DNA of 64,000 nucleotides from Takakia lepidozioides (lineage: Eukaryota > Plantae > Bryophyta): positions 79,856,001-79,920,000 of the forward strand of contig CM060731.1 of assembly GCA_030704615.1 (NCBI GenBank). Direction: 5' to 3'. Positions 19,060 through 61,900 of the stretch are shown piece after piece (position 1 is the first letter of the stretch; the number at the start of each line of letters is the position of its first letter). Made by a program: the position numbers and the translations under genes. Under the pieces are notes generated by a model, which worked only from the letters and a program-made list of their open reading frames with translations, was not told where the DNA came from and did no database searches.

Positions 19060-21827
19060 AGGTACTAGGGTAGTACAATAAGGTTTGGGGTGTAACTAGA
19101 GAGAAGTGCAATAAGGTTTGGGTTTACAGTAAGGGTAAGGGTTGTCGTGCACCTAAGCATCGTGCCACAACATACATCGTTGTCCAACCACACTTCCTAG
19201 CATATAGTCCTAGAAAGCCACGCCACAATGATACGGAAATGGTGAAAAGAGGATAAACCACTCTATCACGTTATATAAGTCAAGCCAATGGCACCTTTGC
19301 TAAATGACTCCACCATACAGACCTCACCCACTCTCCATCTCAAGTTCTAGAGCTATGGCGGCGAGAGAGGCCTCGGGAGGCTCGACTAGAAGAAGACGAG
19401 CCTGCCTACGTCTCACTTGGAGATAACCTCCCCACGTCCCAAGTGAGGTTCGCCACCTCACTTGGCACATGGAACCAAATGAAGTCCCAATGCCAACAAA
19501 ATACAAATATAAATGTATAATGTCCTAATTAGCTAGAAATAACTATTTTTAACTAATCACAAACAAAACCATGACAGGGTTTAGGGTTTGGATTTAGGGT
19601 ACAAAGGGACAAACAAATATGATGGACTCACACTCGGTAGAATTTAAGAAATGGTTGAGGAATTTGATATCCCTGTAATCATCCTATCGTACCTTATCCA
19701 ACAAAAAAAAATATTAAAAGAGCATGAAACATTAAGAAGAGGTAACATGGTAGTACAATAAGGTTTGGAGTGTAACTAGGGAAGTACACTAAAGTTTTTG
19801 GTTTATGGTAAGATTAATGGTTTAGGGGTGATGGTAAAGGTAGGGGTTTTCGGTTTGGGTTTAAGGTACAAAAAGACAAACAAATATGAAAGACTCACGC
19901 TCGCTAGAACTTGGTGTGTGTTAGTAGGATAAAAATAAAAATAAAAATAGAGAAACAAATATTATGGAAGAGTCATTGGGCCGGACAAGTATTTAAATTG
20001 AAGATTCGTCTTTGGAACCTGGTATTAAGATACATAGAAAGCACACTATGCAAAGATAAGTACATGTCAAACCAAAACAAAGGAGAAAACTAGCGCAAAA
20101 ATGGAGTGAAAGACATTTGGAGAACCATAATGGTTATGGTTTTGGTATGGATAGTTCATTTGCATTTGTATGGGAAGGGTAAGGGTTTAGACGTAATAAT
20201 GGCTTAACGACAAAAGTTTACGGTTTACGGTGAGGGATTTGGGAAATGGTTTAGGGTTTGGGTTTAAGGTACAAATGGTGAACAAACATGGAAGACTCGC
20301 ACTCGTTCTATACTTAGTGTGGGTTAGTAGGGCACAAAATGAACAATTGGATAACGAAGAGATTTGGATAACCATAATGATTATGGTTATGGTATGGATA
20401 GTTGATTCCCATTTGCAAATGGAAGGGTAGGGGTACTTTCATAACCATAATCATAACCATAACCACAAGGGTACATAATCATAATGGTTATGGTTATGGT
20501 ATGGATACTTCGTTCCCATTTGCAGGGGAAGGGTAAGGGTTTAGACGTAATAATGGTGCAGGGTTTTGTTTAGGGTTTTCGACGAGGGTTTAGGGTTTGG
20601 GTTGAAGGCACATACATGCCGGAAGACTCGCACTCGCTACAACTTAATGTGTGTTTGTAGGGTACCAAATGAAAATTTGGATACATTGAAGAGATTTGGA
20701 TAACCATAATGGTTATGGTTATGGTGTGGATAGTTGATTCACATTTGTAAAGGGAAGGGTAAGGGTTCTGGGGTAATGGATTAAGGATAAAGGTTTAGTG
20801 TTTTATAGTAAGGGTTTATGGTAGGGGTTTAGGGTTTTTGTTTAAGGTACAAAATAGACAAACACATACGGAAGACTCCAGTCACTACAACTTAGTGTTG
20901 TTAGTAGGGTAGTAAGTAAAATAAAAATGAAGAACAAAATATTATGGAAGTGTAGTCATTACATCGAACAAGTATTTAAATGAAATACTCGTCCTTGGAA
21001 CGTGGTATTAAGATACATAGAAAGCAAAGTTCGATAAAAAAAGTAAGTGCATGTCAATCCAAACCAAAGGCAAAACCTAGCGCAAAGTGAAGGGCGAAGA
21101 CATTTGAATAACCATAATAGTTATGGTTATCTGCAGTGATTGATTATCAAACGCATGGGTTTGTGGTGATCTATGTAGACACTTCAGCCCAGTCCCAAGC
21201 GCATACTTCATTCCCATTTGCAGGGGAAGGGGAAGGGTTTAGACGTAATAATGGCGTAGGGTTTTGTTTAGGGTTTGCGACGAGGGTTTAGGGTTTGGGT
21301 TGAAGGCACAAATGGTGAACATACATGTCGGAAGACTCGCACTCGCTACAACTTAGTGTTTGTTAGGGTACAAAATGAAAATTTGGATACATTGAAGAGA
21401 TTTGGATAACCATAACGGTTATGGTTACGGTATGGATAGTTGATTCCCATTTGCAAAGGGAAGGATAAGGGTTATGGGGTATCGAGTTAAAGGTAAATGT
21501 TTAGGGTTTTATAGTAAGGGTTTAGGGTAGGGGTTTAGGGTTTTTGTTTAAGTTACAAATAGACAAACACTTATGGAAGACTCCAGTAGCTAGAACTCAG
21601 TGTTGTTAGTAGGGTAGTAAACAAAATAAAAATGAAGAACCTAATATTATGGACAAGTATTTACATGAAAGACTCGTCCTTGGAACCTGGTATTAAGATG
21701 TAACATAAAAATCAAACTATTACATGCCTAAGTGCATGTCAATCCAAAACAAAAGAAAAACCTAGCGCAAAAGTGAAGGGATAAGACATTTCAATAACCA
21801 TAATGGTTATGGTTATGGCTATGGTTA
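19060..21827 (+). repeat. Telomere-like compound satellite (TTTAGGG/TAAGGG/TTATGG variants in higher-order units)
   Basis: Repeated GGGTTTAGGGTTT and GGTTATGGTTATGG blocks. A ~700-bp duplication (starts ~20513 and ~21211). The array resumes at 33565-33700 after the LINE insertion. Confidence 0.88.
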
Positions 21828-23440
21828 GAGAGAGAGAGAGAAGACTCCGGCCAAAGCCGGTGTAACTAAGAGTCATTTCGCCTTACGGCTACTGCCCCAT
21901 TTTCGGGGGTAGGCCCTATAAAGAGAACAGGTGTCCAGGGAACACCGGGAAACCAGGAGAAGGTAGTAAATAGGGGACGGTGCCTAGGGTACCTAGGGTA
22001 CCCCAGGATACCTTGGGATGCCGCAGAGGGGTTGGACTCGAGTTGTCGCTTATTGGTGATGATGGCAGTGAGGGAGCGGAGGGCATTGAGGTGGATGGCT
22101 TTAAAGCATTGGTAGATAGGGGGGATAGGGATTTTAAGATTGTCGTGTAACGCGTTTATACTGGTGATATGAATCCCACCTCTAGTACCTACTGTGATAA
22201 CTGACACTAGAAGAAAAATGTGGAATAACCACTGGCCCTTTAACACTACTGTCTTTTTCCACTCTATAAACCACTAGTAACCACTTGCCAGTGGTTAATC
22301 CCAATGAAATGCCACGGTGGCATCACAGACAGTGGTTGGAAGTGGTTTCAACCACTCAGTAGTCCACGTGTAATAATTTGTTTTTATTTATTATTATTTT
22401 TGCTAATATATTTTAATTAATTAATATAATATTCCACGTGGACGAGTTTAGTGGTACATTGTGAGTGGTTATAGACACCTCAGTGATGGGAAGTGGTTGA
22501 AACCACTTGCTACTCCACGTGTAATAATTCAAATTTTATTTGTGATTTATTATTTGGAAATATATTTTAATTCATAAATATAATATTCCACGTGGACGGG
22601 GACAATGCACGTTGATCTTGAGTGGTTAAAGACACCTCATTGATTTGTACCACTTTGACAGTGGTGGAAAGTGGGTGGTGAAAGATACTGCAGTAATTGG
22701 AACCACTATGCTAGTGGTTGCTCATGAGTGGTTGCCTACACAACAGTGATTGGTACCACTTTTTGGGTGATACATGAAAAACTTTAAGTGATTTGTGCAG
22801 CTGTGACAGACTTTGAAAAACAGACAAGTGGCCAGACCATTGTGGGCTGATGCTAATGAACAAATGGTTCCAACAATAAACTTTATTCTGAATCTGAAAC
22901 ATATTCGTCACCCTCTGAATCACTTTGCTCAATTGGAATAGCGGTTGGTTGCACAAATGCTGATTGAATGGTAGCCAACATAGCCAGGTCTTCTTTATTT
23001 AGAGCCGTGGGACCATCTAATGACCTAGGTATTGGTTGATCTAATAAGGTAGACGTCGATTGGCACGCCACTCATCACCACATGCCTCTCTGTCTACTGT
23101 GAACTGTGTCTTCTCTGTTGCATACTTTTTGTCACAAAATGGCAACAAGAATGACACATGTTAGCAATGAAGTATTACATTACTTAGCAAAAAATACCTA
23201 GCATGAATGATACTTTGAAAACCACTGTTTCAAACCACTGGAGGAGTGAGCAGAATGACTTGTAAATGAACATGCTCTTCCAACAAGTCACTCACTCAGA
23301 CATTCCGTTACTACAGCATTGGTTACAATCAGGATGAACCACTGACATTTGTGACTTTGTGGGTGGTTTGATTACACTGGTGACAGTCAGAATTGAAATT
23401 GAACTTGATATGAATAAGGTGCAATGAAAAGAAGTACTCA

Positions 23441-24080: not shown

Positions 24081-24947
24081 GTTGCTTATAGGGTTTGTGA
24101 AAAAGTTAAAAACCTTAAAAAGTTGCCCATCACGTATGTACAATATATACATACTTTTGGGGGGGAATTTCAAATGTGTGCATGTAGCGTACTGGTAAAG
24201 GTTCTTCCTGCGTGTCGCGGGGTCGCGGGTTCAAACTCCTCACGTTGTTTTTTTCCCCCTCATGCACTAAGTCCCACTAAGCCCCACTAAGCCCTATCGT
24301 TGTTGTGCACACTCAGTCCTCGTGCAGGTTGGTCTTAGCAGGTCGCGTTTCAATCTCTGCTCGCTCAGCTGCACCGTGGTGGTTCTCATGGACAATCCGA
24401 CCTTAACTGACTACAGACACAAAGCAACACACGCAAGAGGTCCGTTTGGGTTCATGGTTTGTCAAATCCTCCATGGGTCATGACACAAGGTCGATGACAA
24501 TGTGGTTAAGGCACCTTCTTCTTCGACCTATTTCAACATGTTTTGCCCTCCCATCAGACTCGGCCCTGAATTTGCAGCACGGAGCAAAGCTCGCATGAGT
24601 TTTTTACGATCCTTCATGATGGTGGGACAATCGCAATCGCAAGGTGTGGCTTTTTCTTAATGTAGGATGTGAAGAAGTTTGTCCATCCTGCAAATGTGGG
24701 CTTTTGGCTCCTGTTAGTACCATGATTTGGTATTCTTCCTGATGTTTACAAGGTTCTTGGGAGAGTCAGCTTGGTCTTAGCAGGTCGTGTTTCAATATCT
24801 GCTCGCTTAGCTGCACCATGGTGGTTCTCATGGACCAATGCGATGTTTTTTTTTTCCCTCGAGCACTTAGCCCCACTAAGCCCCATCGCTGCTGCGCACT
24901 TAAGTCCTCGATGATGTTTACAAGGTTCTTGAGAGAGTCAACTTGGT

Positions 24948-26488
24948 CCAGGGTATGCACGGCAGGGACGTGGGATGGAGGCGTTGGAGAGCTATGAGCA
25001 AATGATGGGGGAAGCACATCATGTTTGTGTGCATTTGCAATGCTTGTGCAAGCCTGGCAGCCCTGGAGAAGGGCAAGAGGTGCATAGGGATATCATCAAA
25101 GCTGGAATTGTGCCAAATGTCAATCTGAACACTGCCCTGGCACCTTAGGGGAAAGAGGTCCATGGCGACATCTTCAAAGTTGGAATTGTACCAGATGTCA
25201 TCCTCAACAAAACCCTGGTGAACATGTTTGCAAAATGTGGGTGCATCTAGGATGCAAAGGGAGTGTTCGACACTATGGCTGAACGAGATGTGGTGTCGTG
25301 GAGTGCGATGCTTGCATGGTATGCACGGCAGGGATGTGGGATGGAGGCTTTGGAGAGCTATGAGCAAATGATGGGGGAAGCACATCATGTTTGTTTGCAT
25401 TTGCAATGCTTGTGCAAGCCTGGCAGCCGGCCTGGAGAAGGGCAAGAGGTGCATGGGGATATTATCAAAGCTGGAATTGTGCCAAATGTCAATCTGAACA
25501 CTGCCCTCGCACCTTAGGGGAAAGAGGTCCATGGCGACATCTTCAGAGTTGGAATTGTACCAGATGTCATCCTCAACAAAACCCTGGTGAACATGTTCGC
25601 AAAATGTGGGTGCATCTAGGATGCAAAGGGAGTGTTCGACACTATGGCTGAACGAGATGTGGTGTCGTGGAGTGCGATGCTTGCATGGTATGCACGGCAG
25701 GGACGTGGGATGGAGGCGTTGGAGAGCTATGAGCAAATGATGGGGGAAGCACATCATGTTTGTGTGCATTTGCAATGCTTGTGCAAGCCTGGCAGCCGGC
25801 CTGGAGAAGGGCAAGAGGTGCATGGGGATATCATCAAAGCTGGAATTGTGCCAAATGTCAATCTGAACACTACCCTGGCACCTTAGGGGAAAGAGGTCCA
25901 TGGCGACATCTTCAGAGTTGGAATTGTACCAGATGTCATCCTAAACAAAACCCTGGTGAACATGTTTGTAAAATGTGGGTGCATCTAGGATGCAAAGGGA
26001 GTGTTCGACATTATGGCTGAACGAGATGTGGTGTCGTGGAGTGCGATGCTTGCATGGTATGCACGGCAGGGACGTGGGATGGAGGCGTTGGAGAGCTATG
26101 AGCAAATGATGGGGGAAGCACATCATGTTTGTTTGCATTTGCAATGCTTGTGCAAGCCTGGCAGCTGGCCTGGAGAAGGGCAAGAGGTGCATGGGGATAT
26201 CATCAAAGCTGGAATTGTGCCAAATGTCAATCTGAACACTGCCCTGGCAACTTAGGGGAAAGAGGTCCATGGCGACATCTTCAGAGTTGGAATTGTACCA
26301 GTTGTCATCCTAAACAAAACCCTGGTGAACATGTTTGTAAAATGTGTGTGCATCTAGGATGCAAAGGGAGTGTTCGACATTATGGCTGAACGAGATGTGG
26401 TGTCGTGGAGTGCGATGCTTGCATGGTATGCACGGCAGGGACGTGGGATGGAGGCTTTGGAGAGCTATGAGCAAATGATGGGGGAAGG
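24948..26488 (+). repeat. About 4 tandem copies of a 369-bp disabled PLS-class PPR segment
   Basis: Homologous ORFs start at 25263, 25632 and 26001 (period 369). Unit reads LVNMFAKCGCI*DAKGVFDTMAERDVVSWSAMLAWYARQG.GMEALESYEQMMGE. The same stops and frameshift recur in the copies. Confidence 0.93.
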
Positions 26489-31082: not shown

Positions 31083-32015
31083 GGGTAATAGGACCCAAAA
31101 AGGATGTCACAAACTGTTGTCCAACACATATGGCGCAATCGATCCAAATTTAGGATATTGAGTTCAGTATGAAACCACAGACACATTATATCATTGAAAA
31201 GCCCTTGAAGTTCTTGTCATGCACATATATATATATTTTTATGATTTGACAAGTTTAAGGGGTCCTAAAGGAGTCTTGAATAACACAAGGTTCAAATGTC
31301 CCAAAATGTTGTAGTCCTTTATGACTCATTTTCACACCCTTAACATGTGAAGGTCCTATCAGGGATTTTCATGTGCTTATGTAAGGTATGAAAAAATGCA
31401 AAAAGGACAATAGACCTGCAAAACCAGAAAAACCCATTATCATAGGAATTTTCTACTACGCGGTATGCATACTTAGGGGCACCAAACTTTGGTACTACTA
31501 AACCTCAAAATTTGAACATAGTTCTTTCACCAAAAGTATTTAGCTACTGAAAATGAAGAAGGTCATGTCCTTGAAATGACTACAATGTCCTCCAATTTTG
31601 AATTTGAGGCCAAAATGAGTTCTTATAAATAATGTATCATTCATTGCAAATTGTTTTAAAATTAAAAATATATCAAATAAACTCCTAAAAATTATACGAG
31701 CATCTGTAGCACTGAAGTAGACATCAAATACACCAAACCCGGCTTGGATGCGATGAGGGGAAAACAAATGGTGGCAAATGGAAGTCGAGTTAGTATCGTA
31801 AACTCAAAATTAGTGGTGTACGAGCAAAATTGGAGGTGTACAAGAGGGTGTACGAGCATCCGATGGATGGGGTTGAGGTGCCCACTATCATCTGTCAATT
31901 TCATCACGTTTTCATCGCAACATGTTATGTCCACACGCCGCGGTGTAACGCGCCAGTAGTCAAAATTTAGTCCTTTTCAGGAGTATCAGTGGTACGCATT
32001 AGCATGCTTTCACCC
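31083..32015. mobile_element. 933-bp non-autonomous DNA element (possibly Sola2-like) inserted in the Dualen LINE
   Basis: 4-bp TSD TGTG, termini GGGTAATAG / CTTTCACCC, AT-rich noncoding interior. Removal restores the frame IHIAH|THPFWL. Confidence 0.72.
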
Positions 32016-34399
32016 TGTGAGCAATATGGATAGGGTCGGCCGTGGGATCCAGTGGGGGTTGGGCGGCCCCTGCCTGGGCGAGGAGGTCTGCGTTTTCGTT
32101 ACCAGTGATACCAGTATGGGAGCGAACTTTGAGAAAGTGTATAGGGTGATTAATGGAAGCCGCTTGGTGAATGATAGCTGCAATGAGGTTCCGGTCTGGG
32201 TGGTGAAGGTGGCAGAAGGGGCTGGAGAGATGGTTGCGAAGAAGAAATAGTGACGACGACTAACGATGGGGCAACTCTTGCACCCGGCCTCTTGATCTAT
32301 CGAGTTTGAGTGTAGGGGGTAATGAAGACTTTCATCCCCCATGTGCATATGAGTAAGTGGTGTAAGGTAGAGGGGAGGGTAATGGGCGTGGAGGTGGGAT
32401 GGGTGTGTTGGACAAGTAGCAGTGACGTAGTGGTGGGTTCTAGGCATCGGAGGTATTTAGGGGAGGGGAGGTTGTGTTCGTATAGTAGCTGGTTTGGTTC
32501 AAAGGTGGCTAGAAGGGTGACACCATGGAAGAGTTGTAAAAGGGGGTGGGGGGTTGTCTGGAGGCCTTTGCTGTGTAAGTAGGAGAATAGTACAGGCAGA
32601 GGGGGAGGAGTGGGCAGTAAAGCCCATTGGAGGGCTTCTTGTATGTGGGAGTCAGGAGGGTGAGCAAAGCCGCGACCGGACCACCTGTGCTGGGTGGCAA
32701 GACCAGTGGCACCAAAGATGCAATCTCTATGGTGTGGGCTAACATATGAGGTAAGTTCCATGGGGCACGTGAGTGGGCTAGAGTAGTAGGAGTGGGTAAG
32801 CTGGAAGGAGGAGATTAGGAGGCTAGACAGTTCTCTAGGGATAGTACTATGAGTGTGTGCTTGTGTTAGTTTGGATTGGACGCGGGGTTTTTTGGAGGGG
32901 ATGTCCTTAAGGTAGCGGTCTAATAGCCAACAGATTTCAGTAGCGAAAATATTGTCTGGGTGGCAGTATCTGATATGCCTGTGGGTTAGGAGTAGAGTAT
33001 TTATGCTAGAGCCACGCTAGCCGATCATTGGGGATGAGGCCAATGTATCGGCCGTTTTCAGCACAGACTTTTGACCGATGCGGGCCCTGACAAATTAAGG
33101 GGGAGTCGTGGGCAATGTCTTTATCAGGGTTACATTTGATAGTGTTGACGTGAATGTGAGGAATGACGAGCGGGTAGGGAATGTTGTGGGCATCTGTGAG
33201 TTGTGCTTGAGAGACATGTTGCTGGTGAATGTGTGTCAGGTAGTTAATGTTGGTGCGTTTACGGAAAGGCGAGGCTGTGGATGGGGTCACAGTCGTTGTG
33301 TGAACCAAAGAGGTCGTCCTCAATTTGCCAAGTGTTGTCATTTGAGGAAAAACCGGCCCATTTGCATAGGTAGTACCTATCCACCATCCAGACATGTAGC
33401 GCCAAACGCGTCAGTTGATGTCTAGGTTCTAACCCCGAGAATCTTCAATAATGAAGGCGGTGGAGTTGTTAGGATCGACACTATAAGTGGGAGAACACGG
33501 CGGGGGGGAGGGGGGGATTATGTCTACCTCGGTGCTGTAAGAAATAAGGGAGAGGATGGGGGAGGGCTATGGTTATGGTATGAATAGTTCATGGGCTATT
33601 TGCATAAAAGGGTAATGCTAACATAAAAAGCAAGGTATAAAAAAGGTATGTCAATCCTAAATCCTAAATAGCAAAAAAAAAGGCTGAAAGTACACCCTAT
33701 GAGATTTGGAAAGAAAATGACATTATATAACGACTTTGGGAAGTGCCTAGTTCTCATGGGAGAAAATGGATCCAAAGAAAACATGAGAGAGGATAAAAAG
33801 ACAGACCACCAAATAAAAACTATGAGAAATGAAAATTGCCTAAAATTTGAACAACAGAAGAAAACATGTGAAACAATGAAAGAAAATCAGAGCCAAAGAT
33901 GAGAAGTATGAAAATGAAATGAAATGAAAATTTGGTGCAGAAAAGTCGTAGAGCTTACAGGGAAAATAGAGGAAAACCTCAGAGAAAAAACTTCACGACT
34001 GGCAAATTGAAAAGTATGTCAAGAATGATTGGGTAAGGGTCCTCCTAGTGGGAGGCTTCAGTGGGAGACTTGGTTCTGCGAAAAGCAAGTGCAATCATTG
34101 AGAGATGGACTGGAAATCACCTAATTTTTTCCGATGTTAAAAACCACTTTGACCGAATTTGAAGACTCCAGTGGTCGTGCCCGCCGTTTTTTGTTCTTCT
34201 GAACTGTATGTTATGTAGGCCAGACTCCCCCACAGGGTTTTTCATCGTTGAATAGAAAGTACAGCAGGCCAGAATACTGGGTGAATAACAAACAGACAAT
34301 CAAATTTAGTTCCATATTTTGGTGGGTATACGTAGCAGGCCAGCTCAGGAAGGACTAGTATCCTGCAGGGGCTCAAGGGTCATAGCCAATGTGGCCAGG

Positions 34400-41366: not shown

Positions 41367-44300
41367 CTACATTGAGTTCTTCGATACTTGGGCGAACGTC
41401 TTCTCTAGCTTTTCGACAATGAACTCAAAGCTAGGTCGCTCTTGATATTGCGGTGACCAACATTTCTCCATGAGCGATCTCACACGTCTGGGATAATGTT
41501 TAGCTGTAGCCAAGGGAGGGCGATATCCATGCGCAACTTCTTCAGCCACTTTTTTTCTCTTCCAAAAATGGCGGGATTCGTCCCGCTCAAAAATTTCGTG
41601 AAGGACCATCCCAAAGGCAAATACATCAGCGCTCTTATGTAAGAGACCTGACCCTCTGAGTTGCTCAGGTGCCGCTCGATATGAGCGCGGATGCCATTTG
41701 GCTGGCGGCTTTCTGAACTTCCTCAAGCCAAAATCAGCGACCCTCACGATCTCTTTTGCTTCATCAACGAGGATGCAATCAGGAGACAGTTCACCGTGAA
41801 TGATGGTGACCTGCTCTTCATGCAAGGAAGCCATTGCAAGGGCAACTTGAAGAGCAATCTTCACTGCCAGCGGAGCAGCCAACGGCCACCTATCATCAAG
41901 GTAATGACGCAGGGTCACCCCACTCAAAAGTTCAGTAACCACAACAAATGGGGGACGTTGGGTCGCTCCAATATAGTGCACTAGGTTGGTATGCCGCATC
42001 TTCACCAACATCTCCATCTCAAGCTTGAAAGCGGCAATGCTTGCCTCATCATCAATCAGTGTCACCTCTATGTATTTAGCTAGAACCAGTTGCTTTTGTC
42101 TCCATCGAGCATGCCACACTGACAAAAATCCACTGCCTCCAAGATGCAGTTTTTCCAGCCGGGCAATATCTCCATATTCCACAACCCATTCCCAATCAGT
42201 TGTATCTGTAAAACCCAATCATTGATCTCATCAGTACCCAAGGTTGCACTCATCTTCAAATTCAACATCAATCTGAAGAGTCACCTTCAGAACAATGTCT
42301 GACTGTAGGGAAAGAAAAGACAGAAGGGAATTGTTTTTTTGCAAGTCTGTGTGAAGACTGGTGAACAAAAAATGTGGCCCACTTACAGAAAACATTATCA
42401 TTCCGTAACCATGCTTATGGTTCACGGTCTCTCAAGCAGATTGTCAAATGAATATCCTTGAAAATACTGAGAGTCTACATACTTACAGTCAAATGTAGGC
42501 ACAGAAGCTAAACTGAGTAAACATAATCAAACTGAAGGGTATTTCAGAAGGCATACATACTGAAAAGAAAGACAACATGCAACAGAGAAAGAAAAAGGGC
42601 AGACAAAGACGAAAAGAAACTGTGACGTGAACAAAAATAGCATAACTACCAATATGGATTCGTATACAAGCAGAGAATAGAAGCAAACACTTCGAGACTG
42701 TCTCTACCCAGTCCATGGATGAGAAACAGCATGTAAAGCCATGACAAGCCACCATCACTTCCACACTTTCATCAGCTCCTGACAAAGGGGTGCTAGGAGC
42801 ACAGTACTAAAGAATGGAACTGAACATCCCTGATGGTGTAGAAGAACAGGGAACTCACCTATAAAATCATCCTCCTCAATGGTGCAAGTATCCTCAAGAA
42901 GCATGTTGCCTGCCTGTGTACGCTCGCAACCATTGTATGCGACCACCTGTAGCAAAGAATCTCGAAAGTGTCGAAGTCGTTTGCAGATGTCAACAAAGTT
43001 GGGTCGCTTGCGTGGATTGGTGTCCCACAATCGATCAATGTAAGAAGCAAGATCTTGAGGAATCAAATCTGTTGGCAAATCAGGTCTATCACCACCTTTT
43101 ATCTTCGCATAGAAGGAACTTGTTGACTCTAATGGAACATTTGCAAATGGTGTTTTACCGGACAAAATTTCGTAGCATACCATACCATAGCTGTACACAT
43201 CAGCTTTGAAGGGGTAATGCTTTTGTCCAGGATTCATGCATTCAGTGTGAAATATTCTGAAAAGCTCAGGAGCCTTCCATACAAGAGTCCCAACAGTCCA
43301 TGACAGTGGTGTGAAGGTAGAGTATTTGAGGTTTGCTTTGGCCATCCCAAAGTCCGTCAGCTTCACAGTCAAGCAACCCTTCTGTGCCAGTTCAGGATTT
43401 CTGTTTGGTTTCACAAGAATGTTAGCACTCTTGAGATCTCGGTGTGCCATGCCTTTGCTATGCAAGTAGCGCATCCCTTTAGCAGTTTGTAGCATGATAT
43501 CAAGTGCCACGAGAAGTGGAAATGGTGAATTCAGCTTTGCTCGCATCCTTTCACAAATGTGTTCCTTGAGACTTGTGTCCATCAGCTCCATGATGATGTA
43601 TGACTTTCCGTCCTCTACATGACAGCCATACATTTGCACAATATTGGGGTGATGAAGCTCCGACAAAATCCTGACCTCTTGACCTGCTGTGCCTTGTCCA
43701 CTTTCAATAATTTTCATAGCGCACTGCATGCCGAGGCACCTTACCTCAAACACTGATCCATAAGCTCCCTTTCCCAACAGCCGCATTCGATTTTTGTGAA
43801 GTTGAGGTACATCCACTTTTATGTTCAGCGTTGCTATGGCCTGTGCGGAACGGTCTCGATGAAGTAACTTCTTGGCTAAGTATGACCCTGAAGTCCACAA
43901 CTCCGCTGTTTGATCTTCACATGTGATATCCCACCCATTGGGCCCTATATGCTGGTTAAGATTCAAAAGCAACTCTTGGCGATCCTTTTGCAGAAGCTCT
44001 TTGCAGTCGCTCTCCCATCCTTCAAAGAAGGTCAAGTACTCAGCCATGGCTGATGCTTGAAGCTCCCGAACATTTTGCTCTGACCTTCCCGGATCGCTTG
44101 TTGCAGCAACTATGGCGATGTTCAAGGCGCGGCTGTACCACTTCAGGTCAAGGATAATCTCCGCATACGCAAAAATGTTCTCAGCCAGCTCAACTGCTGC
44201 CCTTACCCAGTCGGCATGTGAACAGTGTTTGTGGATCAAAAATTCTGTTTCCCTCACAGTGCTGAGAAGAGCTGTCAATGTGGCTACACATTCTTGGCTA

Positions 44301-44500
44301 TGGGTAATGATCTCGGATTCTCGAGTCTTCAATAAATCTCTTGTCTCAAGCAGATACTTGGTCACAAGGTACTTGCAGAGGGAATGATTGAAGTACAATG
44401 AGTTTGATGTATGGTACTCGATCCGATCAATTGCCATGACTGTGAGCTCCAGGCACTCTTGTGGAGTTTGGAAGTCGATATTTAACCATCGTGCTGACCT
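41367..44500 (-). CDS. Tandem kinase protein: helical (MLKL/4HB-like) N-terminus + intact TKL/Raf-like kinase + pseudokinase
   Basis: Exon ~44500-42859 has GKGAYG, CAMK, HRDLKSAN, DFG, GTLVWKAPE, DVYSYG. Phase-1 donor ATAG|GTGAGT, an 18-nt micro-exon 42302-42285, and phase-1 acceptor TTTTACAG|AT at 42205 lead in frame into the second domain (VLAK, HGELSPDC, DFG, APE, DVFAFG). The 5' end is uncertain (in-frame ATG at 44437). Confidence 0.85.
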
Positions 44501-46044
44501 CTGACAAAGATTCAGCAATGTCAGATAATGATCGATGGACTCGTTAACACACATCTCATGAAGCAGCAGCCTTCAACCTGTCCTTTTCGATAGGCAAGCA
44601 TCCTCTGGATCATGACTAGATGAAAGTGAATTAATATTTCAGATGTCACAAACACTGCTACACTTATGAGGTTTGAGAAGAAGGGGCAGGCAAGCGGGTG
44701 CCAACGCCTCCTCCTCATGTAAGGCCAGGGTTTGATGAGCTTAACCTTCACAATGATTTACAGGATACTTCACTGATACCCTGAAGGAGACAAATTATGA
44801 GTTGGAGCTTGAGAGCTTCCACAGTGTGCACACAAAGCAGAACATATCGTGTCATAACTCATGCTAAATAAAGCATTGCTCTAAGAATTTCAGCACAATG
44901 ACGTAGACCCACATTGTCATAGCTGCTGGAGTATGGGATTTAGGCCACCCAAGTTCACAGGGCCAGTGCATCATGGACCGCAAGAAACTGCTGCCAACAA
45001 GAACATCAATTGACTGGTAAATATTAAAAGATGAGAAAGTTCATAATGATTTCTTTGAAGAGTCCGGCCTGGGTTGGCCTAGAGCCAGTGTGGGTGGCTG
45101 CACACATGCCCGTAGAACACCCTTATTCTTCAAATAAACTGACTACGTCGATCACCACACGAACAAACATATACACACGTCGAAAATGGGACTTCGGACA
45201 CTCACCGAGTAAGAATCGGTGAGTCGACGAGTATGCGCTGCGAAAGCACGCCAAACCCTTAACATGGTGGCTGCCAACGAGTATTCCCGTACGCCAAGTG
45301 CCCAGGACATTGTTGCAGAATCAACATCGACTTCGCAAGCTACGTGAAGAAATCATCAAGTGCTAGATTTCCAGAACCATATAGTTCTGAAACCCATATA
45401 GTTACAACCTCCTCTGAATTCTGAGGCCAACAGGATAGGCTAGTCGCACCCAAAACCAGACCAAACCGCAACAGGTGAGCTGCAGATTCACTCCCCCGTA
45501 AGAACCCTGTCATCCCAACGCTGGGGTAATTAGCATTGGTGCCCACCAACCTCCGAGTTGCAAAAACCAAATAGAGTGTGTGACTGATAAGAAGTTCTTA
45601 GACATAGCGGGTCCATAACAATTAGCTCCACTAAGACCTTCGGCGGTATGCTGCATCTTCACATCAACCCTAGTTTCAAAAGATCAGGTGTGACAATAAT
45701 GCCACACCTGAATAGAATCTGAAACATATTTTCTCCACAACCCACCACTAGACTCCGGCAGCTGACACATTCTCCTCAAATATGAAGCAGCAAAGTCCAT
45801 CATGCTTCCGGAACCGTCAAGGCGGTGGTGAGGAAACCCCCAGAGAAGTCCCTGGACTGTAAAACGTTGACCCGCAGCAAGTGCCAGACAAGCTGGGCTA
45901 TCGGGGATACATAAATGAAACAAGTTGGATTTATGGACGATGACCTCATCTTCTCATTAGTTTCTGTGTGGATGAATGACATGGCAGCGGCTCATCTCTC
46001 TGAATGACATGGAGGTAAGCGGAGAGGATTACGATGTAGTATAC

Positions 46045-50712: not shown

Positions 50713-51800
50713 CATGGGGTCGGGCAAGCCGAAGCGAAAGCGGAACGGCCCAAAAGATGATGATCCCGGTGAGCCTGATGGGGGCGGCGTGTCACCGAGG
50801 CGGCCGTTTGAGGAAGCGATGCATGTTTCCAAAAACGAGGGCGCCCAAGAGCTGGAGGAATCCGAGGAGTCGGAGCCCGAGGAATCCTTGAGAGCTCCGA
50901 CAAACCAAGAGATGCCTCCCATGCCGGCAGCCTTTTGGGAAGGGTTGTTGGCGCAGTTTGGCGGGACGTTGAAAGACGTGTTGAAGGCGGCTAATGCCAC
51001 TTCCGCTAAGGCAAAGTTTAAGATGAAGCCTAAGCGTCCGAAATCGGAAGGCACTCAACACCTGGCTCTTGGAGCTAGAGCAGTACTTTCGGGCGGCCAA
51101 GTTGAGTGACGAGGATCGGGTGGAAGTGGCTCCCACCTATTTGAGGGGCTATGCTCAACAATGGTGGCAGAAACGCCTTCACGACCGAGGCCCAAGCCCG
51201 GAAACCTTGAACTGGAGTGGGTTCAAGGAATTGATGAAGAGACAGTTTGTGCCCCTCAACGCGTCCTGGCTTGCTCGGGACAAGATGAGGAATTTGAAGC
51301 AAACAGATGACATTCGGGGGTATGTCCAGGCTTTCAATGTGCTGTTGCTCGAAGTCGCGGACATGGCAGAACCAGAAATGGTCTTCAACTTTGTGGCGGG
51401 ACTGGCCCCATGGGCCAGGCGGAAGTTGGAGGAGAAGCCACCCAAGACTTTGAACGAGGCAATTGAGAGGGCTGAATGTTTCTCGGATGTCCCTAGGGGT
51501 GAGAGACAAGGCCGTACAGAGCTGAACCACAAGAAGACCCGGCGGGAAGGTGACTCCTTCCGACCGGAAAAGAAGTGGGATAGGCCACGCGGCGACAATG
51601 GCACGTGGAAATCGAAGGGAGGGCCTTCACACGTCAAGGCGGCACCCGGTGCTTCGAAAGGAAAAGCGGGTGGAGCGGCTTATGGCGGACAGAAGGCGAG
51701 CTTTGATGGAGTGTGTTTCAATTGCGGGGAGCCCGGGCACATGGCCAAGAAGTGCATGAAGTCCCGGCAATTGAACATGACTCGGGCGATACCATCAGTC
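50713..51800 (+). CDS. gag: Gag (retrotransposon gag + CCHC knuckle), frameshifted near 51060
   Basis: ELEQYF..YLRGYAQQWW..LKQTDDIRGYVQAF and CFNCGEPGHMAKKC. Confidence 0.85.
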
Positions 51801-51849
51801 GCTTGGTGGAAGCGGTGGTCGCCAGGACTTGCAAGGTAGGCAAATTTTC

Positions 51850-54800
51850 TTGTGAGTTGTATCAGGAAACTGGCGCCTTACGAAAAGGGAGTCAGTTATT
51901 GTTCGTGGATGGGATAATATCCGGAACTAATGTGTCGTTGTTGGTGGACACAGGAGCGTCGCACTCCTTCATGACACCGGCAACGGCACAAAAGCTGGGA
52001 CTCCCGACAAGTGACGTGGGGCCTCTATTGAGGTGCGTTCTGCCAAAGGAGAACCACAGTTGGCGACAAGGTTGGCGTTTGATGTTCCTCTTCAACTGGG
52101 GAGTTGGGAGGGACGTGAGAACTTCACCATCTGCGAGATCGATGGAGTAGATCTCATTTTGGGGTTGACCTTTTTGAGCAAATCCGGAGCGGTCATAGAT
52201 GGCCGCAAGAGAGTAGTCACGCTGCCATGTGGGAATGGTGGCGAGGTCTTACGAGTGTCGGAAACGCCCAAATCCGTGGGAGGACGAATAAACCTTCTGT
52301 CAGCGAGGGAGTGGGCCGTGGAGAAGGCACACGAACCCCAGTTTTTGCTTTACATTAGAGAAGTGAAGGGAGAAGGCGATGGGGAGCCGAGCCCAGATTG
52401 GATCAAGGGGATCATGGAGAAATACCAGGATGTGATGCCGGAGGATTTACCAAGCGGCCTGCCACCGCGAAGAGGAGTTGACCACAAGATTGAGGTGATA
52501 CCGGGATCGGAACCGCCTGCCAAGGCACCCTACCGGTTGAGCCACAGGGAGTTGGTCGAGCTGAAGACTCAGCTCAAGATCTAATGTCAAAGGGGTACAT
52601 CCGGCCGAGTAAGTCACCTTACGGAGCCCCGGTGCTATTCGCAGACAAGAAGGATGGGACGCTGCGGATGTGTGTCGATTACAGGGCTCTAAATAAGGTG
52701 ACTATAAAAAACAGGTACCCTTTGCCAAGGATCGACGACCTCTTCGATCGGTTGGCAGGAGCGAAGTATTTCAGCCAGATCGACTTGCGCTCCGGCTATC
52801 ATCAAATTCGGGTGGCGGAAGGAGATGAGGAGAAGACCGCGTGCATGACAAGGTATGGTTCATATGAGTTCTTGGTGATGCCTTTTGGGCTCACTAATGC
52901 ACCGGCGACCTTTAGCACGCTGATGAACAGCCTTTTTCAGGAGTGGTTGGATGACTTTGTGATCGTGTACATCGACGACATCTTGGTGTACTCGAAAACA
53001 AAGAGGAACACCTGGAGCACCTCAAAAGGGTGTTCCAAAAGTTGTGAGAAGGGAAGTTGTATGCCAAAGCTTCAAAGTGCGAATTTGGGGTCACGAAAGT
53101 GGAGTTCTTGGGGCATGTGATTACACAGGATGGGATCAAAATGGATGACAGAAAGGTGAAGGCGATCTTGGACTGGGAGCCTCCGACTTCGGTCCCGGGA
53201 GTGCGTTCCTTCCTAGGACTTGCCTCCTATTACCGGAAATATGTGAGAAATTTCGCCAAGATCGCGGGGCCGCTGTCGGACCTTCTGTGTAAATCTAAAG
53301 TCTGGGCATGGAACACCTTTTGTGGCCAAGCTTTTGCTGAATTGAAGCAGCGGATGGCGGAAGCTCCAGTCTTGAAAATCCCGGAGTTCGATCGTCCGTT
53401 CGAGATACATACAGATGCGTCGGACTTCGCGATTGGGGGTGTACTGATGCAAGATGGACGTCCAGTGGCTTACGAAAGTAAGAAACTGAATGAAGTGGAG
53501 CGACGGTGGCCGACGCACGAGAAAGAGATGAAGGCGGTGGTGGTGCACTGTCTTGAGCTCTGGCGCCACTATGTTGGTTCCAACCCAGTGAAGGTGTTCA
53601 CGGACAATGTCACGGTGAAGTATTTTGCCACGCAGCCCAAGTTGTCCCCAAAACAACTTAGGTGTCAAGATACTTTGGCGGTGTTCGACGTGGATATCCA
53701 GTACAAACCGGGACGAGACAACGTGGTGGCCGATGCTTTAAGTAGAAAGCAGCAGCTTGTTGGTGTACAAGGGCGAGACGGCGCTCCAAAGGAAGATCCG
53801 GAAGGCTTGCCGGAAGGATGAGCTGGCAAAGTCCGTGATGTAGGACTTGAGAATGGGGGTTAAATCGCAGTTCCACTTGCAAAATGGGTTGCTCCGGTAT
53901 AAGCAAAAGCGTCTCTACATGCCGAAGGGAGGGATCAGAGATAGCCTCTTGAGAGAATGCCATGATAGCCCGCTTGCGGGCCACGGCGGAGCCAAGCGCA
54001 CTGCGGCACTCTTGAAGAAAGAGTATTTCTGGCCCAAACTGAGGGAGGAGGCGGAGGAGTATGTCAAGACATGCACCACATGCCAACAAAACCGGAGCGA
54101 GTACAAAAAGCAAGCGGGGCTGTTACAACCCTTGCCGATTCCAGAGGGGACTTGGGAAAACGTCTCGATGGATTTCATGACTGCTATGCCGCTGTCAAAA
54201 GGATTCGATGCAATCATGGTGGTGGTGGATAGGTTCAGTAAAATGGGCCATTTCATCCCCACCAAGGAGACGGCAACGGCGCAAGAGACAGGGCGACTTT
54301 ACTTCGCCCACGTCTTAAAGCATCATGGAGTCCCAAAGGATATTGTCTCGGACCGCGATCCAAAGTTTACGAGTAAATTCTGGAGAGCACTTTGGAAGAA
54401 GATGGGGACGAGGCTGAAGATGAGCACCGCCTTTCGACCTACGACCGACGGCCAAACAGAAAGAGTGAATTCCGTAGTGAAGCAGATCTTGCGGAATTAC
54501 GTGTCGGCAGACCAAACAGACTGGGTGGAACACTTAGACGCGGCAGAGTTCTGTTATAATAACACAGAACACTCCGCAACGGGAGTTTCCCCTTTCGTAT
54601 TGGTCTATGGAAAAGCACCTCTGGTGCCGACAAGTTGGGCCGCCCAGGACGTTGAGGAACCGGCAGTAGCGGTGGTACTAGAAGAACGCGAGCGTTTGTT
54701 GAAGCTCGCAAAGTACAACATTGCCAAAGCTAGGAAACGGTATGAAAGGCAGGCGAATCGGAAGCGGAGGGAAGTGAAGTTTGAGGCAGGCACGGAGGTC

Positions 54801-55288
54801 TGGTTGAACATCAAGAATTTCCGACTACCTCCGGAAGTGAGTCCGAAGTTTGTACCTCCGTATGCGGGACCTTTCGCATTCGGAAGGTTATGAATGAGGA
54901 TGTGTATGAATTGGAGCTACCGGCAAACAGCAAGGTGCACCCAGTATTCCATGTCTCCCTTTTGAAGCCTTACTTCAAAGATGAAGCGCGCCCGAATCGG
55001 CATCAAGTGTTGCGTCCGCCACCTATGCTGTTGGATCATGAAAATGAACCTGAGTACGAGGTGGAGGCAATACTTAAGTCGAGGAGGTTCAAGAACCGAG
55101 AAACGGAGTATCTCGTCAAATGGAAGGGCTATCATCTTGTGGAGGCATCTTGGGTACGTGCCTCAGAAATGGGAAACGCATCCGAGGCGGTTGCAGTTTT
55201 CGAAGGGCGACCTAAAAGCGGAAGAAGCGTTGATGGGGACATCAACCTTGGAGCGTGGGGGAGGAAATGCATGCTTAGCCCGGCTTAG
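51850..55288 (+). CDS. pol: Pol (protease, RT, RNase H, integrase, chromodomain) split by several frameshifts
   Basis: [79 protein letters not shown]. Confidence 0.93.
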
Positions 55289-58919: not shown

Positions 58920-61900
58920 CTACCCAACCTCCATCATCAGCATCATTATGACCAGTCTCTCCGTCCACCGCAATTGCCTCACCCCCCATGGAGATCCGAA
59001 ACCATGATAGATACGTCTTCCTCTTGGCTGAGCATGCACAACCACCTTCCAATTCCCCCCTCTTGTTTTGTCATCGGAAAAGAAAACTTGCTCCATGTCT
59101 GAAGGCCGTGAAAAAAGTCTCATCGGAGGGACGATGAGTAGGGTTGAGCCTATCTGCATTGACGCGCATGAAACCACAATCATCTTGCACTAGTGTTGCG
59201 GAGGGCCCCACAAGATGTGGCTGGAACCACCTTCCCTTGAAGAGAAGAGGCCGGTAACTTGTATACTGAAGTTGGAGTATGCTCTCATGCTCTCCAATGT
59301 ACTCAAGTTTGCTCATAGCAGGTCGTGTATCTCCCTTGCCCCACACAGAGTCTTGCCAATATGTGGCACACAAGCCAGAATTAAAGGTAATTTTGCGCTT
59401 CATGTCAAGAGTACGAATGCGGAAATGACGATCGTGAACCCAAACTGCCGTGTATGAGGCCGCGAATTGAGATGGGTCCCTTATAATGTCTTGCACCAAA
59501 TCTAAAACCACCTCTCCTTGAGCAACAACGTCATAAACTGAAGTCCGAAGCCACTGTTGGAATGAACTTAGAGGCTGCAATTCCATGGGCAAATTTTGTG
59601 AAGGAACATTCCGGCGGCCTGCTCCTTGTCGTGGGCGTCAAGTAACCGGCCTTGGATGGTTCCGCCTCCATGCAAGTGTCTCCTCCTCTCGTTGCTAAAC
59701 AAGATTATTGTAGCTTGCCTCCCACTTATGTATGGATGGGGTGTTCTTCAGTATGAAGTCATGCGCTTGCTCAATCACCAAGGTCGGCAACTTTACCCTC
59801 TTCGATTTTTTGGGCAAAACGATGTCTTTGGTTCGTGCATCCTCCTCTTCCTTCCATATCCGAGGGGCTTCCTCATCCACCCTTGCCATGTACTCCGTGC
59901 AATAGAACATAGCTTCTTGCAACGTATACCCCTCCGCCATGCTACCCTGTGGGTGCGCCATTTGTCTTACAAATCCTTTCAAAGTCTTCATATAACGCTC
60001 AAGGAAGTACATCCACCGAGAATGAACGGGGCCGACAATCGAAGCCTCCACTAAGTGCACTACCAAGTGCACTTGGATGTCCAAGAAGGAGGCAGGAAGG
60101 TGCATCTCCAACATACACATTACCTCCGCCGCCTCTTTCTTCATGCGTGGAAAATCCGCTTCCTCCAACTCTTTGGAGCAAATCCACCGGAACAAGCCTC
60201 TCAATCTATAGATTGTCTCACGAACCTCGGGAGTCAATCTCCCACGTACTACAATGGGCAAAATGTCTTGCAATAGATTGTGGTTGTCATGAGACTTCAA
60301 ACCATGGACCCCGTCTTCTTCGCTAAACTTCGTACGGAGGGATGACCCATAACCAATTGGGGTTCGGACAGCACTTATGGTGACATTCACTTTCTTGTAT
60401 TCCTCCTTTGTCCATTGCCAAGGTGCGCGCCTATACTTCCACCGTACAACACCCTTTGGGTCCACACCATTTTGTTCGGCCCATAGATGGCGCATGCGAC
60501 CCTGCTCCTCAAGCTCCTTTCTAACACCGAGAGAATCTCTTTTTGCAGCCACTCCCTTCTTTGCCGGCGTGCCATGAAGAACCCGAAAAAGGGATGAGCA
60601 GACATTCTTCTCAATATGTACACGATCTAGAAGATGGCGAATCTTCAGGTCCTACATATATCCTCATCCACAAATACTTACACAATTTTTTTTTACGTGA
60701 AAGTGACAATGCAACGCATACCAAATGTGCAATATCACTGTTCACATGCATGCATAGGGATATTGACGGTGTTTTTGTGGAATATGTACCGCCCAATATG
60801 ACAACTTGTAGAAGATTGAAAGTCGTTTCATGCCGGGCACGTCCACTTCACCGTCCGTGCCCGCATGGGCCTCCTTCCATCGATCCTCCCAAAACTGCCC
60901 GGATGGTGTCATAGGGGGGGGGGGGGGACGTACTTCCTCTTTGCCATCAAACAAGTGTTTCTCTCTTCTTCTCCATCGATGGCTCATAGGAAGAAATTTG
61001 CGGTAGTTGGGATACACCATCTTATGAAGATGGTGGGAGCCATGTGCATCAAGATCGCCACAATGCAAGCATGCATGGTACCCTTTGGTGCTTAGTCCCG
61101 AGCAAACAGTTAGTCATGTACTACACATCCCGCCACATTAGCAAAGATAAAAAGTTGTCATGTGCATGGCCCATAATGTCATCTACCCCACTACGGTGCA
61201 CAAGACTGTCGCCGCTACTTCAATCAATCCCAATCCTCATCGAAATAATCCGGCATTGACAAGTGAATGTACACGAGTTGTTCATGGGGAACATAATATA
61301 CCTGGATAATCATGCATTGTCCAAAGCAAGATGTCTCTCATCTGAAAAGATCCGGCCATAGGGTCAAGTGAAGCATCCAATGCCGAGACCCCCCTCCATA
61401 GCTCCTTAAGTTCATCAACAAGAGGTCGCAAGTACGTGTCCATGTTTGCCACTTGTTTTTTCCCTATGAGACATTCCCATCATTGTTTCAATGCTCCACC
61501 AATATGCAAATTATACTACAAAATGAATTACACGTCTTACTCCATGATTATGTCACTCATCAATCTTGCATCCGAATTGCGTCAGAGATCAGAAGTTTAA
61601 TGTAAAGTCCAAGGCAATAATAAACATGAAATGAGTACACTCACCTGGCACAATGGCAGCCAACATGATATGGCTTTTTTTAATTGAAAGATACAGAGGG
61701 ATGTTGTAATTCACCATGGTCACCGGCCAAGTGGAATGACTACATGACTGGACAGAGAATGGGTTGACCCCATCCGAGGAGAAGCCGAGGTGGACATGTC
61801 GTGGGTCCTCCAAGAGAAAAAGCCACATCTCTTCAATATGCCTCCATGCTTATGAATCTTGTGGCCCGCACACCTTTCCCGGGGGGCTCCGATGTGAGGC

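Follow-up and report, generated by a model that had tools for sequence, protein, structure and literature searches.

A predicted moss gene joining an MLKL-type four-helix bundle and a catalytically complete kinase domain to a conserved pseudokinase

The plant MLKL family was originally described across seed plants, with HeLo-mediated cell death and a part in immunity reported for the AtMLKLs (10.1101/681015), and the monocot MLKLs of the DUF1221 clade (clade 1) that have been examined are all without catalytic residues (10.64898/2026.08.07.743466). The cereal proteins Pm13 (PMC10951266) and R3AK (10.64898/2026.08.07.743466) belong to the kinase fusion proteins and have roles in immunity or cell death, and the model put forward for tandem kinase proteins gives their pseudokinase a regulated, non-catalytic signalling role (10.64898/2026.08.07.743466). 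Here we describe a gene in a 64,000-nt stretch of the genome of Takakia lepidozioides (contig CM060731.1; the whole stretch is called the window, and all coordinates refer to it) in which these two topics of plant immunity, MLKL-type bundle executors and kinase-pseudokinase tandem receptors, appear to meet in one natural protein.

Within the literature searched, the MLKLs of non-seed plants have merely been counted, by NLRtracker (PMC11218826), and no description of moss MLKL-tandem kinases was found. The sole mention there of MLKLs with two kinase domains is an uncommented figure of 4 among 360 in monocots (10.64898/2026.08.07.743466). The layout reported below, an active-type MLKL with a conserved C-terminal pseudokinase kept in several mosses, is apparently undescribed. 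The family would offer a compact system in which to follow phosphorylation-driven bundle release, with a bearing on the switching-on of plant MLKLs and on what the pseudokinase does in tandem kinases.

Two open reading frames (ORFs) on the minus strand of the window, 42755-44554 (599 aa) and 41367-42218 (283 aa), both match Pkinase and PK_Tyr_Ser-Thr strongly in Pfam searches. An earlier note on this DNA had proposed that they are spliced together in frame through phase-1 sites, and the gene model agrees: the donor (G/GTGAGT, exon ending at 42859) and the acceptor (TTTTACAG/AT, exon starting at 42205) are canonical, the join creates a GAT (Asp) codon, and the spacing matches that of the orthologues. 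The extent given in that note was incomplete, an upstream exon having been overlooked. Exon 1 joins in phase 0 at 44501/44500, and the start codon of the 599-aa ORF (ATG at 44554) is therefore intronic. The peptide of this exon carries a motif, RVWRAxAxxTRxLTDxY, that is also present at the N-termini of P0001 from Ceratodon and of P0009. In all, an intact gene of three exons is predicted (Table 1), with 861 codons, no internal stop and GT-AG at every junction; exon 3 is without an ATG of its own, its ORF opening with a TTG in the acceptor region. A hidden mini-exon within intron 2 was considered and rejected, given that at the junction the orthologues show no additional residues. Each exon was searched and folded separately, and natural orthologues served in place of the full-length protein.

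Relatives of the gene provide the evidence that both kinase-like domains belong to a single polypeptide. Searching with exon 2 by words retrieved proteins from mosses that are 848-881 aa long and 50-57% identical, the top named matches being two proteins of Ceratodon purpureus, and exon 3 matches the C-terminal halves of the Ceratodon proteins at 53-54% identity. The junction corresponds residue for residue and with equal length (...DDFI-D-TTDWEW... in the window, ...NDFI-D-ADDWNW... in Ceratodon). The complete tandem ORF is present on four contigs (L001-L004) that come from public runs and from a JGI sample, and L003 and L004 include an exon-1 equivalent as well; because this ORF is intron-less, and one of the four contigs ends in a sequencing adapter, they look like assembled transcripts. 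In both Ceratodon genes an intron interrupts the boundary between kinase 1 and kinase 2 at this very position, and another intron follows a short first exon at the corresponding site; one of the two genes reproduces the three-exon layout exactly. Whether the locus gives one transcript or two had been named beforehand as a check, and the transcript-like contigs together with the Ceratodon intron position favour one. Two kinase-like domains in one polypeptide, the arrangement of tandem kinase proteins, are thus indicated by the splice model, the orthologues and the transcript-like contigs alike. That bundle, brace, kinase 1 and pseudokinase all reside in one gene we regard as very probable.

The 5' end is less uniform in the family. 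The relatives P0002-P0004 begin just before a conserved SLSW motif, a placement similar to that of the intronic ATG at 44554 of the window, and no exon-1 equivalent was found within 798 nt upstream on L001. The family may have alternative 5' ends or retain intron 1.

The N-terminus, previously described as helical, is all-helical in an AlphaFold2 model of residues 1-235, and the model of the whole of exon 2 reached a pLDDT of 82.6 and a pTM of 0.88. When the N-terminal model was compared with 48,161 chains by VIA-align, the first three ranks were all taken by MLKL structures, namely the human MLKL N-terminal domain (6ux8_A, Z 11.6, 139/152 residues), AtMLKL3 (6ka4_A, Z 11.2, 168 residues) and mouse MLKL (4btf_A, Z 9.8), with NRG1.1 CC-R and Rx CC ranking below them; region 14-220 of the model aligns to AtMLKL3 chain residues 1-282. 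The single best Foldseek match of the whole exon-2 model was again AtMLKL3 (6ka4_A, E 2.2e-17, TM 0.66/0.67), over 534 columns that amount to the whole chain, and the other matches were all bare kinase domains. Profile comparison by hhalign related the N-termini of the clade to DUF1221-positive N-termini with a probability of 98.4% (E 5.6e-15), and weakly to the MLKL_N-positive N-termini of mosses (47%, E 2e-4). Among 39 aligned relatives, Pfam detected DUF1221 in 14 and MLKL_N in 8, and the distant relatives carrying either domain align over 85-94% of exon 2. The similarity to a four-helix bundle for which the N-terminus was to be checked is consequently found by fold and by profile. We conclude that the N-terminus, as modelled, combines a four-helix bundle with a brace in the manner of plant MLKLs (HeLo/DUF1221 type); in the predicted structure the brace links the bundle to the kinase-like domain and the bundle is packed on it, as is characteristic of plant MLKLs.

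Kinase 1 retains every catalytic motif, as already recognized in the earlier note: the glycine loop GKGAYG, the lysine of AMK, the alpha-C Glu, HRDLKSAN, DFG and APE. In an alignment that includes the window copy, none of the corresponding positions (GxGxxG, K, E, HRDLKxxN, DFG and APE) varies among 39 relatives. Its best sequence matches in the PDB are AtMLKL2 (6lba_A, 5e-36) and AtMLKL3 (6ka4_A, 3.4e-34), followed by RIPK1 (2e-27) and Raf, so that the AtMLKLs lead RIPK1 by about nine orders of magnitude in E-value. In the tree of kinase domains, DUF1221 proteins, among them P0107 of Cryptomeria, group with the kinase-1 clade. The domain is thus homologous to the kinase-like domain of the AtMLKLs. 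The loss of catalytic residues that marks plant MLKLs as pseudokinases is not found in it; AtMLKL2 has HGD and GFG and no glycine loop in the alignment where the window has HRDLKSAN, DFG and GKGAYG. By sequence and by fold the MLKL unit consists of four-helix bundle, brace and kinase 1, and kinase 1 is therefore, on these comparisons, the MLKL kinase-like domain itself with its catalytic residues kept, not an added or inserted RIPK3-like activator. The proposal that an executor, an activating kinase and a decoy pseudokinase are fused here consequently stands as far as bundle, kinase and pseudokinase share one gene, and falls in treating kinase 1 as a separate activator. The bryophyte relatives all keep the catalytic residues, while the seed-plant DUF1221-type MLKLs compared or reported (AtMLKL2 and monocot clade 1) are without them, a contrast of relevance to the question of what the kinase domain of plant MLKLs was like ancestrally.

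Kinase 2 differs from kinase 1 at the very center of catalysis. Its catalytic loop reads HGELSPDC, with Asp, Lys and Asn changed to Glu, Ser and Cys, so that the substitution of HRD by HGE and of the catalytic-loop Asn by Cys in an intact ORF, both pointed out before, are confirmed. Two further features ascribed to the domain hold in part: the glycine loop has lost its third Gly and is degenerate to that extent alone (GxGxxS), and the segment from DFG to APE is short (24 residues) yet within the normal range. Together with the complete kinase 1, the HGE...C loop gives the combination of one domain predicted active and the other predicted inactive that is typical of tandem kinase proteins. All 16 kinase-2 sequences (window copy included) agree in HGEL-PDC, in the beta-3 Lys and alpha-C Glu, and in DFG and APE, and 56 of their alignment columns are invariant. 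Pairwise dN/dS ratios (omega; Nei-Gojobori method) spanned 0.10-0.30 in kinase 2, 0.07-0.29 in the N-terminus and 0.06-0.21 in kinase 1; these values are rough, and the sole informative pairs are the two least saturated ones (P0001-P0007 and P0001-P0002), with a kinase-2 omega of 0.10 and 0.23. Kinase 2 is constrained and not decaying, and all three modules are under purifying selection; the neutral evolution of domain 2 that was to be checked is not observed.

The origin of kinase 2 was explored by similarity searches and in a phylogenetic tree built from 157 kinase domains. When exon 3 was the query of a word search, only family members stood above 48% identity, followed by generic TKL kinases at 32% or less, and the best matches in the PDB were Src/Abl, Raf, TAK1 and KSR. 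An assignment to the RLK/Pelle type was rejected, the top 60 PDB matches being Raf, Abl, Src, TAK1 and KSR. Descent from a recent duplication of kinase 1 was rejected as well, since the two domains are about 25% identical and lie on opposite sides of a split with 97% support. In the tree, the kinase-2 sequences form a clade of their own (100% support) on a long stem, and it is this clade that the 97%-supported split separates from all MLKL-type kinases. Judged from these sequences, kinase 2 is an add-on from a separate TKL lineage, with a dead catalytic loop and with the nucleotide-pocket residues (Lys, Glu and DFG) kept.

The trees of kinase 1 and kinase 2 are congruent: in both, the window copy branches off as the sister of all remaining members, and the Ceratodon paralogues separate alike. 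Consequently, the two domains evolved together and the fusion predates the duplication behind the two Ceratodon paralogues, so that the architecture is, by this phylogenetic evidence, old.

Other four-helix-bundle proteins with two kinase-like domains were recovered from non-flowering plants, namely proteins of the P0013/P0016 type in Sphagnum, P0014 in Ceratodon and P0107 in Cryptomeria. The first group (P0013, P0016, P0017, P0024, P0028 and P0038, from Sphagnum and others) and P0014 have an MLKL_N-type bundle and two kinase domains derived from internal duplication. In several Sphagnum proteins, P0016 among them, both kinase domains have HRD, and in Ceratodon P0014 (KC19_12G181100) the degenerate domain (HGELKCSN) comes first and the intact one second. 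The DUF1221 proteins P0107 (Cryptomeria japonica), P0096 and P0036, of about 890-970 aa, have a dead first kinase-like domain with HLD or HMD and a likewise dead, RLK/Pelle-looking second domain without HRD and DFG. The order of live and dead domains thus varies among these layouts, and their second domain is of another origin than that of Takakia: the second domains of P0013/P0016-type proteins, P0014 and P0107 belong to the MLKL-type kinase group or are unrelated, and none falls in the Takakia kinase-2 clade. Therefore, the combination of four-helix bundle and tandem kinases would have arisen several times, and a repeated, independent origin in Sphagnum, Ceratodon and Cryptomeria is in part supported by these sequences.

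The coordinates of the gene, of its modules and of other features of the window are collected in Table 1. GC skew was strongly positive in some 2-kb bins of the window (0.34 in 20001-22000 and 0.39 in 32001-34000).

Table 1. Predicted features of the gene and its surroundings in the Takakia lepidozioides window
Feature	Positions	Strand	Details
Exon 1	45206..45310	-	Opens with ATG; 35 codons; N-terminal extension; phase-0 donor TCG/GTGAGT
Intron 1	44501..45205	-	705 nt; GT...AG; phase 0; acceptor at 44501/44500; contains ATG 44554 opening the 599-aa ORF
Exon 2	42859..44500	-	547 codons + 1 nt, stop-free; four-helix bundle, brace, kinase 1, linker
Four-helix bundle (HeLo / DUF1221-type)	44099..44464	-	Exon-2 residues 13-134; AlphaFold2 helices 13-33, 39-66, 68-91, 98-134
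Brace helices	43862..44092	-	Exon-2 residues 137-213; long helices 137-185 and 195-213 (AlphaFold2)
Kinase 1	42974..43789	-	Pfam Pkinase, E 1.3e-45
Kinase 1 motifs	GKGAYG 43757-43774; AMK 43712-43720; HRDLKSAN 43421-43444; DFG 43346-43354; APE 43265-43273	-	
Intron 2	42206..42858	-	653 nt; GT...AG; phase 1; separates kinase 1 from kinase 2
Exon 3	41367..42205	-	Kinase-like domain 2 (predicted pseudokinase); TAG stop 41367-41369
Kinase 2, Pfam span	41406-42146	-	PK_Tyr_Ser-Thr, E 1.7e-37
Kinase 2 motifs	LAK Lys 42075-42083; HGELSPDC 41775-41798; DFG 41727-41735; APE 41664-41672	-	
Ty3/gypsy-type LTR retrotransposon	51069-54893	+	Immediately upstream of the gene; ORFs with domains Retrotrans_gag, zf-CCHC, RVT_1, RT_RNaseH and integrase
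ORF with DUF4218	59695-60552	-	E 2.8e-30
232-aa ORF, FemAB_like (PF04339)	2448-3146	-	E 4.5e-45; probably an exon of a peptidoglycan-related plant gene
327-aa ORF	24918-25901	-	Weak transglutaminase-like match, E 1.2e-5

A working mechanism can be proposed by analogy with the AtMLKLs, Pm13/R3AK and the tandem kinase proteins. At rest, the bundle would be kept against brace and kinase 1 in the manner of the AtMLKL3 tetramer. Auto- or trans-phosphorylation would come from kinase 1, and the release of the bundle would be under the control of the pseudokinase, a regulatory or sensing (decoy-like) module without catalysis of its own. Once freed, the bundle may act on membranes, through ion flux or cell death, in defence. 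The overall reading, a moss gene of MLKL type with an active-type kinase and a fused pseudokinase that operates by auto-inhibited bundle release in defence, is in our judgement moderately probable; an immune or cell-death role, taken by itself, is put forward tentatively.

A bolder version of this mechanism would be a necroptosis-like switch contained in one chain in mosses. The live MLKL kinase would phosphorylate itself or the tethered pseudokinase, the pseudokinase would serve as bait for or sensor of pathogen effectors or an upstream signal, and the change of state would free a membrane-opening bundle. We consider such a switch doubtful. If it were true, kinase-driven activation of MLKL would exist in plants, and the pseudokinase-only MLKLs of seed plants might be seen as reduced descendants of an active-kinase ancestor.

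Several observations weigh against the overall reading. Any function of the family members is predicted from sequence, the Ceratodon copies being annotated as hypothetical proteins, and expression and splicing in Takakia itself are deduced from relatives. Pfam, including DUF1221 and MLKL_N (PF22215), gave no direct match to the N-terminus of the clade, a search with the N-terminus of the window copy by itself yielding nothing even at E 10, and the sequence profile of this N-terminus matched no PDB chain. Foldseek with the N-terminus alone was weak (E 0.6-1.2), although in TM score AtMLKL3 and AtMLKL2 were far ahead of all other matches. For helical bundles, a VIA Z score of 10-12 can result from nothing more than a similar arrangement of helices; because such scores can mislead on their own, the MLKL identity rests on the agreement of sequence, profile and whole-chain fold. 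In the selection analysis, dS was saturated (>1) in most pairs and undefined in two. No NLR/NB-ARC-type ORF occurs among the long ORFs of the window, small exons not having been screened. Finally, the window copy lacks a Ser/Arg-rich tail and stops five residues after ...AQVSK (41367-41385), where full-length orthologues continue for about 20-25 residues after kinase 2; the serine-rich C-terminal region of plant MLKLs is accordingly not present in it. Note that the tail of the orthologues recalls the serine-rich end of seed-plant MLKLs.

The strongest of the competing explanations holds that the gene encodes an MLKL-like TKL signalling kinase for stress or development that executes nothing: the N-terminus would be regulatory or serve oligomerisation, the pseudokinase would be a scaffold, and neither membrane attack nor immunity would be involved. 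The complete catalytic set of kinase 1, unusual for a pure executor, speaks for this explanation, as do the signalling reported for Pm13 through brace and kinase and not through the four-helix bundle, and the lack of any NLR or defence gene beside the gene among the long ORFs of the window. It has to contend, however, with the superposition of bundle, brace and kinase together on AtMLKL3, with best matches of the bundle that are membrane-acting MLKL domains, and with an N-terminal domain as constrained as the pseudokinase; we judge it unlikely.

It could also be supposed that the gene is silent in Takakia, recently disabled or giving two products, in which case the fusion would be confined to the relatives. 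Its location between transposons (e.g., the Ty3 element at 51-55 kb) and a C-terminal tail shorter than in the orthologues would fit such a history. Against this, the three exons are all open and flanked by canonical splice sites, every family-invariant residue is kept (the invariant columns having been computed with the window copy included), and exon 3, with its TTG inside the acceptor region, offers no start codon of its own. This explanation is therefore given a low probability, well below that of a signalling kinase.

Protein kinases that lose the catalytic Asp and Asn are as a rule no longer capable of phosphotransfer, and a dual kinase in which kinase 2 is atypical and active, with Glu in place of the catalytic Asp, is extremely improbable: the strictly conserved beta-3 Lys, alpha-C Glu, DFG and APE do suggest a working nucleotide pocket, but E, S and C replace Asp, Lys and Asn in all 16 sequences and the third Gly of the glycine loop is gone.

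Comparison with described systems sets the MLKL-type reading of the Takakia gene in context. Animal RIPK3-MLKL follows the same logic of active kinase, pseudokinase and four-helix-bundle executor; two of the three best fold matches are the MLKL bundles of human and mouse, and in the kinase comparison RIPK1 follows directly after the AtMLKLs. In the animal system, however, the pseudokinase carries the bundle and the kinase forms a protein of its own, whereas here the bundle is carried by the active-type kinase and the pseudokinase is distal, and no orthology is implied.

Pm13 and R3AK resemble the Takakia protein in joining bundle and brace to a kinase with catalytic residues. They differ in having a single kinase domain, in the lineages of their kinases (LRR-VIII/DLSV-type in Pm13) and in being independent fusions within Poales. 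Their bundle, of the cereal MLKL_NTD/Cbl-N type, appears to belong to another family; the N-terminus studied here matches the MLKL_N-positive N-termini of mosses weakly (47%). The tandem kinase proteins WTK1/Yr15, Rpg1, Sr62 and RWT4 share the order of kinase and then pseudokinase in one cytosolic polypeptide; those of cereals have no four-helix bundle, signal through a linked helper NLR and draw their kinases from other lineages.

The closest described systems are AtMLKL1-3 (6ka4, 6lba), which provide the best matches in sequence and in fold over the whole chain and share with the Takakia protein the N-terminal DUF1221/HeLo bundle, the brace and a homologous kinase-like domain. In the AtMLKLs this domain is dead (HGD, GFG and no glycine loop), whereas kinase 1 is complete, and where the AtMLKLs end in a serine-rich region, the Takakia protein is predicted to end in a second kinase-like domain.

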